Shown one piece after another: positions 57,882-60,714 of a DNA stretch of 64,000 bases. Position 1 is the stretch's first letter, and every line of letters starts with the position of its first letter. The stretch is from Macrostomum lignano (taxonomy: Eukaryota). The stretch covers positions 124,001-188,000 of the forward strand of contig NIVC01000619.1 of the NCBI GenBank assembly GCA_002269645.1, written 5' to 3'. Under the pieces are notes generated by a model. That model saw only the letters and a program-made list of their open reading frames with translations. It ran no database searches and was not told where the DNA came from. A program made the translations under genes and the position numbers.

Positions 57882-58073
57882 ATGAAGTGGCAACTGGTTC
57901 TCGGACTTCTGCTGTTCGCAGCCCTGGCCGTCGCCGAGCCTTCCCAGGAGGAGAACGACAAGGGCCAAAGTGATTCGAAGGATGATCGGACCGACATGGA
58001 CGTTTCCGACCTGTCGGATGAGCAGTTCCCGAAGCTCAGGAAGAAATTCCACCTTCATTTACCTGGTAAATAA
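57882..58073 (+). CDS. Peptide precursor copy 7 (type B, ...RKK-FHLHLP-GK*)
   Basis: 63 aa; same signal family, diverged acidic spacer, conserved EQFPKLRKK, Gly-Lys amidation signal. Confidence 0.85.
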   Translation: MKWQLVLGLLLFAALAVAEPSQEENDKGQSDSKDDRTDMDVSDLSDEQFPKLRKKFHLHLPGK

Positions 58074-58829
58074 GCAACATCGTACATCGAAATCGCTTCA
58101 AGAATCGGAAGATTATGACAACTCACAGCTGACCGGACTTTGATCTCTGACTCGGAACCACCCAATTCTGAATGGTAAACTTGAAATCTACTCGGCTCTT
58201 ATTCGCTGATCAGTTTTATTATCTGACAAATACAACAGCATCGTCTAATTAGGCACCCAGTACAACGATTAGATTTTTGTTGTTAAGCTGCGTAAATTTC
58301 TTTGTAAGTCGGAAGTCATAATGGGGAGAAATTTAAAATACATTTAATTTCAATTAATGATCTTAAAATATGACAGAAAAATAGCTGTTTCGAAGGAGCG
58401 ACTTCTCCAAAGGCGGCTGCTGCTCGCAAAGACTGGCCGCTTGTCCGCCCGGCGTGAATTTCCCCAAATTGACCTGCGTTCTACAGGTTCGCATGTTTCA
58501 TAGTGTGCTGGTGGGTGGCTTGTAAAAGTAGCTGCTCTTAAATTAAGAGTAGTTTCGGAGTCAAATTGTGGTGGATGAGACCTATATGCGCGTCAATATG
58601 GTCAGCCAATGTCGTTTTTTCTGTGCCTTGTTGCACTGTACGGATATTTTCGCCCGCATTAAATAGAAGCATTTACTGCTCGTTATTCCAAATATTACAA
58701 TAGACATTTGGATTCAAAACATTCAGCACCAGGTGTATTTGTTAATACGAACTTAGCTAAAGAACACCAAAAAGTAAATGAACAAAAAAGAAACAATCAA
58801 TAAAAACTTAACTACACTCTTAACTAACT

Positions 58830-60047
58830 CTATCTATCTATCTATCTATCTATCTATCTATCTATCTATCTATCTATCTATCTATCTATCTATCTATCTA
58901 TCTATCTATCTATCTATCTATCTATCTATCTATCTATCTATCTATCTATCTATCTATCTATCTATCTATCTATCTATCTATCTATCTATCTATCTATCTA
59001 TCTATCTATCTATCTATCTATCTATCTATCTATCTATCTATCTATCTATCTATCTATCTATCTATCTATCTATCTATCTATCTATCTATCTATCTATCTA
59101 TCTATCTATCTATCTATCTATCTATCTATCTATCTATCTATCTATCTATCTATCTATCTATCTATCTATCTATCTATCTATCTATCTATCTATCTATCTA
59201 TCTATCTATCTATCTATCTATCTATCTATCTATCTATCTATCTATCTATCTATCTATCTATCTATCTATCTATCTATCTATCTATCTATCTATCTATCTA
59301 TCTATCTATCTATCTATCTATCTATCTATCTATCTATCTATCTATCTATCTATCTATCTATCTATCTATCTATCTATCTATCTATCTATCTATCTATCTA
59401 TCTATCTATCTATCTATCTATCTATCTATCTATCTATCTATCTATCTATCTATCTATCTATCTATCTATCTATCTATCTATCTATCTATCTATCTATCTA
59501 TCTATCTATCTATCTATCTATCTATCTATCTATCTATCTATCTATCTATCTATCTATCTATCTATCTATCTATCTATCTATCTATCTATCTATCTATCTA
59601 TCTATCTATCTATCTATCTATCTATCTATCTATCTATCTATCTATCTATCTATCTATCTATCTATCTATCTATCTATCTATCTATCTATCTATCTATCTA
59701 TCTATCTATCTATCTATCTATCTATCTATCTATCTATCTATCTATCTATCTATCTATCTATCTATCTATCTATCTATCTATCTATCTATCTATCTATCTA
59801 TCTATCTATCTATCTATCTATCTATCTATCTATCTATCTATCTATCTATCTATCTATCTATCTATCTATCTATCTATCTATCTATCTATCTATCTATCTA
59901 TCTATCTATCTATCTATCTATCTATCTATCTATCTATCTATCTATCTATCTATCTATCTATCTATCTATCTATCTATCTATCTATCTATCTATCTATCTA
60001 TCTATCTATCTATCTATCTATCTATCTATCTATCTATCTATCTATAT
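58830..60047. repeat. (ATCT)n microsatellite ~1.2 kb between copies 7 and 8
   Basis: Direct reading. Confidence 0.98.
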
Positions 60048-60523
60048 ATATATATATAGGCATAAAGATACAGCAGATAGATATATACTTTTCTATCTGA
60101 GTTCTTAGCTGAGTTTCGAGTGCCTAGAGTTAATTTTTGCACTAGACAATTGGGCAAATGAATTTTGATACAGAGTTCCGTCAGCCTCAATAAAGTGACT
60201 TCGATATACGATTTGTCATGAAAGCGACTAAAAAGTATCTGAATGAAGATGCATTTACAAGTCCTTTACTTCACGGCTCGCAACTTGAAGATATTTACAA
60301 AGCCCAACAAAACAAACAGTATAGTTTCTTTGCGAGCCTATTTATTTGGTACTTGTTGGTATATTTAATAAAACTCGCCAGTGAATAAACACTGAGTACA
60401 CTACACCTCAACCATTTAGAAATTGGGGGGGGGGTTAGAGTCAGAGTTCAGAGTCCGGTCGGTGGGAGTTGTGAGTGCGAGTCCCTTAATCTTCGATAAA
60501 GCGACTTCGATGTACGATTTTGT

Positions 60524-60714
60524 TTATTTACCAGGTAAATGAAAGTGGAACTTCTTCTTGAGCTTCGGGAACTGCTCATCCGGCTTCCCGGAAGCGTCCA
60601 TCTCGGAGGATCATCCTTCGACTCACGTTCGCCCTTGTCGTCCTCCTCCTGGGAAGGCTCGGCGACGGTCAGGGCTGCGAACAGCAGAAGTCCAAGGGCG
60701 AGCTGCCACTTTAT
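60524..60714 (-). pseudogene. Peptide precursor copy 8 (type B pseudogene; would give FHFHLP-GK)
   Basis: ATG to ATA; 1-nt deletion in the spacer (191 vs 192 nt); TATA/E-box region deleted. Confidence 0.85.

Follow-up and report, generated by a model that had tools for sequence, protein, structure and literature searches.

The 64,000-nt window analysed here, part of contig NIVC01000619.1 (208,600 bp) of the Macrostomum lignano assembly GCA_002269645.1, contains a single-exon gene, type B (57882-58073, plus strand), that encodes a 63-residue predicted secreted precursor, MKWQLVLGLLLFAALAVAEPSQEENDKGQSDSKDDRTDMDVSDLSDEQFPKLRKKFHLHLPGK, followed by a stop codon. Type B belongs to a tandemly amplified family of secreted precursors found only in M. 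lignano, and we lean towards host-defence-type peptides as their products. The C-terminus of the precursor, EQFPKLRKK-FHLHLP-G-K, is as given in a first-pass annotation of this DNA, and its processing into an amidated hexapeptide is strongly but indirectly supported by comparative evidence. The closest protein matches of the open reading frame (ORF) are M. lignano "hypothetical proteins".

Type B is a real, intact gene rather than a chance ORF. A gene unit of 700-750 bp, composed of a promoter of ~250 bp, a 5′ untranslated region (UTR), a single-exon coding sequence (CDS), and a 3′ region of ~330 bp, occurs nine times in the window (blastn and alignment), and the same B gene is present on a second contig, L001 (NIVC01000570.1). 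The gene order in L001 is A, A, A, A, B, psB, A, as in the window, where A denotes the related type A genes and psB a broken type B copy. The nine-fold repetition of a unit with promoter and UTRs, together with the B gene on the second contig, argues against chance. The type B locus is laid out as follows.

57794-57827, plus strand: promoter module, GGAAACACGTGCCGATCCGATGCGCATATAT, of a kind found once ahead of every intact gene in the window (eight genes)
57799-57804, plus strand: E-box CACGTG in the promoter module
57820-57827, plus strand: TATA-like box TATATTAA in the promoter module (type A counterpart, TATAAAT)
57858-57881, plus strand: annotated 5′ UTR; the public partial protein P0028 begins eight codons before the ATG
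57882-57935, plus strand: predicted signal peptide, MKWQLVLGLLLFAALAVA, with A-V-A at -3 to -1, near-invariant in the whole family
57936-58037, plus strand: acidic pro-region, EPSQEENDKGQSDSKDDRTDMDVSDLSDEQFPKL, with no internal dibasic site
58038-58046, plus strand: RKK, predicted processing site; the KK is invariant in the family
58047-58064, plus strand: predicted mature hexapeptide FHLHLP, the same in eight intact genes
58065-58073, plus strand: Gly-Lys-stop (GGT AAA TAA), predicted signal for carboxypeptidase trimming and then amidation
58074-58401, plus strand: 3′ UTR and the sequence that follows it in the duplicated unit, as shown by a window-wide blastn with the A and B units and by alignment
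58829-60057, no strand: (TCTA)n microsatellite, ~304-307 units, separating B from its pseudogene
60366-60749, minus strand: type B pseudogene unit, with an ATA start, a 1-nt deletion and no promoter module; the terminal frame reads ...EQFPKLKKKFHFHLPGK and stops

The precursor would be processed in four steps. The signal peptide would be removed after A18 (a site set by inspection with the -3/-1 rule only), a convertase would cut after the invariant Lys-Lys, a carboxypeptidase would take off the terminal Lys, and amidating enzymes would convert the exposed Gly, yielding FHLHLP-NH2. The computed [M+H]+ values are 762.44 for FHLHLP-NH2 and 879.44 for the corresponding type A peptide, GFHVHFH-NH2. 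Conversion of a Pro-Gly-basic sequence to a Pro-amide is familiar from the precursors of thyrotropin-releasing hormone (TRH) and calcitonin. The model is supported because eight B-type genes keep RKK-FHLHLP-G-K while their spacers diverge or are swapped, and because KK and a terminal Gly or Gly-Lys are kept around a hypervariable peptide in 20 of the 21 distinct precursors of the family. The reading of Gly followed by a basic residue as an amidation signal is likewise supported: type B and three distant long paralogs end in Gly-Lys (the latter in ...P-GK, ...LL-GK, and ...PI-GK), and Gly or Gly-Lys closes all but one of the precursors. The enzymes needed are documented in another free-living flatworm, the planarian S. 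mediterranea. PC2-dependent amidated peptides have been verified there by mass spectrometry (PMC2953531), and PAM, PHM, and PAL genes with measured activities are known (PMC5461114).

The annotation had treated type B as a single copy, its "copy 7", but B is a subfamily. At least eight intact FHLHLPGK genes are present in the assembly (one in the window, one in L001, two in L002, two in L003/L005, and two in L006), and the eight all encode ...EQFPKLRKKFHLHLPGK. They are of three kinds, B, "B2", and a hybrid; the "B2" and hybrid kinds are located on L006 (~64 kb farther along the L001 contig), L002, and L003/L005. The "B2" genes have a B-like spacer 89% identical to that of B. In the hybrid, the signal and spacer share 93-95% DNA identity with A versus 84-86% with B, whereas the KK and peptide module shares 92-94% with B versus 78-81% with A. 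The hybrid gene is annotated as Mlig013173g3 and lies at L002:6313-6495 (+), L003:6338 (+), which is equal to L005:10016 (+), and L006:10016 (+). It represents either the ancestral B form or a product of gene conversion, and it demonstrates that the spacer and the peptide are modules able to evolve separately.

Codon differences within FHLHLP across the intact genes (CAC/CAT, CTT/CTC) are all synonymous. In counts over six of the FHLHLPGK genes, the RKK and peptide module of B-type genes has three synonymous changes and no non-synonymous change, and the spacer has 4 and 17, respectively (Fisher p=0.017 versus the module). The spacer of the canonical B lineage has one synonymous and seven non-synonymous changes versus 13 and 6 for A-like spacers (p=0.013). 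Together with a 9-nt insertion relative to the A-like spacer, these changes agree with the claim that B has a rewritten acidic spacer; the B-specific segment encodes ...QEENDKGQSDSKDDRTDMDVSDL... The pattern is consistent with the C-terminal module, kept on two different spacers, being the constrained part of type B.

The selection data also bear on the idea that the secreted acidic pro-region, or the unprocessed polypeptide of ~45 residues, is the functional product, with the basic tail serving only for sorting or neutralisation. The type A spacer speaks for it, being under strong purifying selection and far more constrained than the B spacer: the ratio of non-synonymous to synonymous polymorphism (pN/pS) is 0.02, and allele changes among 12 copies comprise 10 synonymous and one non-synonymous. 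The A pro-region may therefore have a function of its own. However, in the B lineage the spacer varies freely and the C-terminal module not at all, two different spacers carry the B peptide, and neither KK nor the terminal Gly varies between very different spacers. We therefore regard an active pro-region as very unlikely to be the main product, and return to the processed peptide.

The two C-termini of types A and B had been taken as independent predictions of amidation. Type A and all outgroup paralogs on L007 end with GGT TAG ATG, and type B ends with GGT AAA TAA. Once the T of the stop codon is lost, the frame continues into AGA TGA, which is now AAA TAA; read-through therefore adds exactly one residue, and that residue is basic. 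The Gly-Lys of type B is thus best read as derived from an ancestral GGT TAG ATG by a 1-nt deletion, with the Gly codon retained through the frameshift. In addition, a 3-nt loss in B removes the Gly after KK, and the peptide differs from that of A by Val to Leu, Phe to Leu, and His to Pro, the last being the Pro described earlier in place of the third His. Recombination of the ...HLPGK ending from long paralogs (...HLPFPGK, ...LPIGK) was considered and rejected, as B and A align colinearly across the stop codon and the 3′ UTR. The comparative support for processing stands, but B is no fully independent witness of it, because it was derived from an A-like gene by few mutations.

The broken copy psB lies beyond the microsatellite, on the opposite strand. 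Its start codon is ATA instead of ATG (60714-60712, minus strand), and a 1-nt deletion within 60602-60609 shifts its frame. The final 25 codons (60601-60524, minus strand) read ...PDEQFPKLKKKFHFHLPGK and a stop, and the C-terminus is FHFHLP-G-K, as had been noted; the Leu to Phe change is the sole amino-acid change seen in any B peptide. Homology to the B unit is limited to -35 to +340 (blastn), and a module scan of the window finds no E-box/TATA promoter module at psB. In L001, psB (at 11756, minus strand) carries the same three lesions, indicating that pseudogenisation is older than the duplication of the locus. The (TCTA)n array between B and psB has ~304 units in the window and 29 in L001, which accounts for the 1.1-kb difference in spacing between the two loci.

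The promoter is shared by the intact genes. A 31-nt module, GGAAACACGTGC(C/T)GATCCGATG..TATAAAT, comprising an E-box and then a TATA box, precedes every intact gene of the window (eight in all), each time as a single occurrence. The modules of the other seven are at 30378 (-), 33472 (-), 47695 (+), 50706 (-), 52717 (+), 54959 (-), and 61698 (+). The E-box, CACGTG, is ~17 nt upstream of the TATA box and is common to all subfamilies, including the distant Arg-type genes of L007; Logan contig L004 has a similar layout at 380-430. The shared module suggests common regulation by a factor of the basic helix-loop-helix (bHLH) type.

The public annotation has a gene model, P0028, for the window copy of type B, which starts 24 nt upstream of the ATG, with its 5′ end ~30 nt past the TATA-like box. 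The public gene models of M. lignano were built from RNA-seq transcript assemblies (PMC5730564), indicating that B-type transcripts exist. The annotation had staked its reading on expression of "copy 7". A transcript-derived model does exist for this copy, but its expression is not separable from that of its paralogs, because near-identical paralogs share reads. Family gene IDs are absent from the supplementary tables of the published M. lignano papers that we examined for expression data, and no M. lignano single-cell atlas was found in the literature.

With these data, it can be asked whether the window copy, like psB, is a type A paralog that is decaying or no longer functional. Its TATA box is altered (TATATAT versus TATAAAT), its 5′ UTR is 39 nt shorter than that of type A owing to a 39-nt deletion in the alignment, its spacer gathers non-synonymous changes, and the neighbouring copy is already dead. 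However, the ORF is intact in eight copies, changes in the peptide module are synonymous only, the promoter module is kept, and a transcript-derived gene model exists. Decay of type B is thus extremely unlikely. We favour type B as a functionally shifted paralog of type A, probably not a mere duplicate.

The family to which B belongs was found by an exhaustive profile search of 1.84 billion representatives and a word-indexed profile search, which together added about 20 precursor types to A and B. Except for one Logan contig, L004, these are all "hypothetical proteins" of M. lignano. Neither search returned an annotated relative outside M. lignano; the databases probably cover other Macrostomum species poorly. 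Family members have in common a signal peptide, MKWQL(A/V)LGLLLCAALAVA or MRWQFVLGLLLCAALA, an acidic pro-region, and the KK, which is invariant in 21 precursor types while the residue at -3 varies (R, K, E, A, Q). Internal dibasic sites are absent from types A and B and from the other pro-regions inspected. The peptides after KK include FIHIHF-G, IFRVHVRF-G, FVRLRVRI-G, IFRVRVHI-G, FVRVRARIRL-G, and WLRVRARVRI-G; long members are Arg-rich or Pro/Arg-rich, some with 18-32 residues. No Pfam family matches; a "Defensin propeptide" match is sub-threshold (E=0.068) and compositional, and was discounted as evidence.

A conserved F-H-x-H core had been proposed. Instead, what the family conserves is alternation of hydrophobic residues with Arg or His. 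At the polar positions, Arg can take the place of His and vice versa, and peptides rich in His are found on three classes of spacer, so that alternation is the conserved property; the hydrophobic moment is maximal at 180 degrees in every short peptide, A and B included. Mature peptides of Arg-type paralogs have a charge of +3 to +13 and pro-regions of -5 to -13. The negative charge of the pro-region scales with the positive charge of the mature peptide (r=-0.88), although the sequences are related and non-independent and the value is only indicative.

Some records of the family stand apart. L004 (SRR31628392_42504, family gene at 541-813) has a predicted Pro/Arg-rich peptide with RVRLP/RVRMP repeats that ends in KK without Gly; it may represent the family in another strain or another Macrostomum species. 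The public models P0035, P0041, P0012, and P0023 appear mis-built. In some, for example P0035 (129 aa), an apparent antisense or upstream ORF seems to be fused to the precursor; in P0012, the signal peptide is duplicated; and P0023 is a truncated member labelled 'SERPIN domain-containing protein' in UniRef.

Host defence is favoured because a conserved prepro-region precedes a hypervariable cationic amphipathic peptide with an anionic, charge-balancing pro-piece, and because of tandem amplification, restriction to a single taxon, and Arg-rich long members. A conserved signal and pro-region, a hypervariable C-terminal peptide, and tandem multigene clusters are all present in the family. The family would make short amphipathic beta-strand peptides of hydrophobic residues and Arg or His, along with some long Arg-rich peptides, and the anionic pro-region would keep them harmless during export. 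The His-only types A and B would be cationic only at acidic pH or when metal-bound; the type B peptide has a net charge of only +1 at neutral pH.

Several points weigh against this assignment. To our knowledge, every natural antimicrobial peptide is longer and more cationic than FHLHLP-NH2 (six residues, +1), and sizes of ~6 residues are more typical of neuropeptides. We infer both KK cleavage and amidation, and the peptide itself is a predicted one; KK is also rarer as a convertase site than KR or RR. The charge correlation is only indicative, coming as it does from related sequences, the selection counts are small, though consistent, and the constraint on the type A spacer means that pro-regions may be more than neutralisers. 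Finally, B-type transcripts are assignable to the subfamily and not to the window copy alone.

The same size argument raises the question of whether these are prohormones of neuropeptides or peptide hormones, with FHLHLP-NH2 and GFHVHFH-NH2 as neuronal or neuroendocrine signals acting on receptors. The order of signal, spacer, dibasic site, short peptide, and Gly or Gly-Lys is exactly that of a prohormone, a length of 6-10 residues is typical, and one paralog (P0006, P0011) would end in -VRF-amide, recalling flatworm RFamides. In flatworms, PC2 and amidating enzymes act on precursors of this kind (PMC2953531, PMC5461114). However, the C-terminal motif, which is the usual receptor determinant, is not conserved among paralogs (-HFH, -HLP, -IHF, -VRF, -VHI, -VRI, -IRL, -LPI, -PFP), and alternation is conserved instead. 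In addition, the tandem copies number in the dozens, some members are Arg-rich peptides of 18-32 residues, the charge of the pro-region scales with that of the peptide, and the search of 1.84 billion representatives gave no relative annotated outside M. lignano. A role as neuropeptides, although the chief rival to host defence, is therefore unlikely.

A further reading starts from the His peptides. If cleavage is exactly after KK, type A would start with G-F-H; in it, and likewise in the FIHIHF paralog, the third residue from a free N-terminus would be His, the classical Cu/Ni-binding arrangement of the amino-terminal copper- and nickel-binding (ATCUN) type. Type B has lost the Gly, starts with F-H, and would end with a Pro-amide, so A and B should differ in metal chemistry. 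Designed seven-residue apolar/His peptides form Zn-dependent catalytic amyloids, and the predicted peptides of types A and B resemble them. A and B might be natural counterparts of these designs, self-assembling through Zn or Cu into extracellular beta-sheet fibrils that form a secreted coating or a catalytic or antimicrobial matrix; A would build, the Pro-terminated B would cap or tune, and gene copy number would set the A:B ratio. Both His peptides have a strict two-residue periodicity (G-F-H-V-H-F-H; F-H-L-H-L-P), their predicted ends are amidated, type A has the predicted His-3 N-terminus, and the A:B gene ratio of 7 to 1 in the window fits a ratio of matrix to modifier. However, the His peptides lie within a continuum of Arg and mixed Arg/His paralogs, which makes a fibril material unnecessary as an explanation. 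Arg cannot coordinate metal, and this favours charge over metal ligation as the common property. Also, each cluster has three B-type genes, and A-type genes are not always next to them. The chance of such a material, and of the division of labour between A and B, is very small indeed, and the proposal of B as a "fibril cap or modulator" is unsupported; the wider family contains many alternating hydrophobic/(Arg or His) peptides, and those of A and B are only two among them.

M. lignano is a laboratory model with transgenesis and RNA interference (RNAi), and the family is annotated there only as "hypothetical protein". If host-defence peptides are indeed made, they would be the shortest natural amidated beta-strand peptides of this type, at 6-10 residues, and would form a natural series from all-Arg to all-His in which single-base changes between Arg and His codons tune charge, pH gating, and metal binding. 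The hybrid gene, the stop-codon frameshift, and the family-wide Gly or Gly-Lys ending make the processing model testable through two exact masses. The E-box/TATA module could also serve as a compact promoter for transgenes, possibly tissue-specific ones, if the predictions hold.

The seven type A copies in the window are all single-exon units ending in ...EQFPKLRKKGFHVHFHG and a stop codon.

30082-30261, minus strand: type A copy 1 CDS (...RKKGFHVHFHG and stop), ATG at 30261
33176-33355, minus strand: type A copy 2 CDS, ATG at 33355
47813-47992, plus strand: type A copy 3 CDS, ATG at 47813
50410-50589, minus strand: type A copy 4 CDS, ATG at 50589
52834-53013, plus strand: type A copy 5 CDS, ATG at 52834
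54663-54842, minus strand: type A copy 6 CDS, ATG at 54842
61825-62004, plus strand: type A copy 7 CDS, ATG at 61825

Arrays of (CTA)n with ~120-140 units occupy matching positions beside copies 1 and 2 (31219-31640 and 34312-34679), and the two copies therefore appear to be part of a duplicated segment of ~3 kb. A fragment of the family unit at 31639-31754 contains the 3′ UTR only. The string "IKWQSS" at 63921 (minus strand) was considered as a family remnant and rejected, as blastn gave no match.

The rest of the window is rich in repeats. Very long microsatellite arrays, (TCTA)n/(TATC)n with 220-307 units, lie at 58829-60057, 14817-15903, and 26766-27643. A 23-nt satellite, TTTAATGTTTGACATGGTGGCTC, forms large arrays at 1232-9783 and 37864-38688, the second inverted, and other minisatellites with periods of 21-43 nt occupy much of 1-28600. 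Between type A copies 2 and 3 lies a non-long-terminal-repeat (non-LTR) retrotransposon (40836-44745, plus strand), with ORFs that match a reverse transcriptase (RVT_1), an endonuclease/exonuclease/phosphatase domain, and zf-RVT; with a GC content of 0.6, this stretch is where the window is GC-rich. An ORF fragment at 13881-14294 (minus strand) matches Pfam Ion_trans (E=9e-17). It probably represents one exon of a gene for a voltage-gated cation channel, located upstream of the peptide cluster.

Literature searches by peptide strings, signal peptide, and gene IDs found nothing relevant, nor did a search on Macrostomum and antimicrobial peptides. The family, its strictly alternating peptides of 6-10 residues, and its all-His members appear to be undescribed. 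The kind of system is already well known, both as amidated precursors and as host-defence families with conserved prepro-regions. For the type B ending, the closest precedents are the precursors of TRH and calcitonin, in which a Pro-Gly-basic context gives a Pro-amide, a precedent for conversion of ...L-P-G-K to Pro-NH2; these hormones are unrelated, and the likeness is limited to the processing signal. The planarian NPP, SPP, and PPP prohormones likewise have a signal peptide, basic cleavage sites, and C-terminal Gly amidation (PMC2953531). Most of these are single genes whose C-terminal motifs are conserved and which have orthologs in other flatworms, whereas the M. lignano family is amplified, has a hypervariable peptide, and yielded no orthologs in the profile search.

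Histatins, clavanins, and piscidins also have multiple His residues and a His-3 Cu/Ni motif, and the ends of clavanins and piscidins are amidated. Type A (G-F-H) and the FIHIHF paralog are predicted to have the His-3 motif, whereas type B, with His at positions 2 and 4, is without it. Moreover, those peptides have 20-40 residues and are helical or disordered, compared with the six residues of type B. In length class, two-residue periodicity, and C-terminal amide, types A and B are closer to designed peptides, namely the apolar/His heptapeptides of Zn-amyloids and the Ile/Val-Arg/Lys beta-sheet antimicrobials. The designed peptides are synthetic, and types A and B are likened to them by predicted sequence alone. 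We know of no established natural counterpart of designed alternating peptides.

At the level of gene families, the arminins of Hydra and the nlp/cnc clusters of C. elegans are also taxon-restricted, tandem, and built from anionic N-terminal and cationic C-terminal parts. Their sequences are unrelated to those described here, and they are known by activity and induction, whereas the M. lignano family is known by sequence. The nlp/cnc genes illustrate that prohormone-like precursors can be immune effectors. The amphibian preprodermaseptin superfamily differs in several respects: it belongs to another phylum, there is no sequence homology (no Pfam match), the dibasic site is KK here and not KR, and its peptides are helices of 20-30 residues rather than beta-strand alternators of 6-10 residues. 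Nevertheless, the two share a conserved signal, an acidic pro-region, a dibasic site, and a hypervariable C-terminal peptide, often amidated, with a terminal Gly or Gly-Lys, in a rapidly diversifying multigene family.

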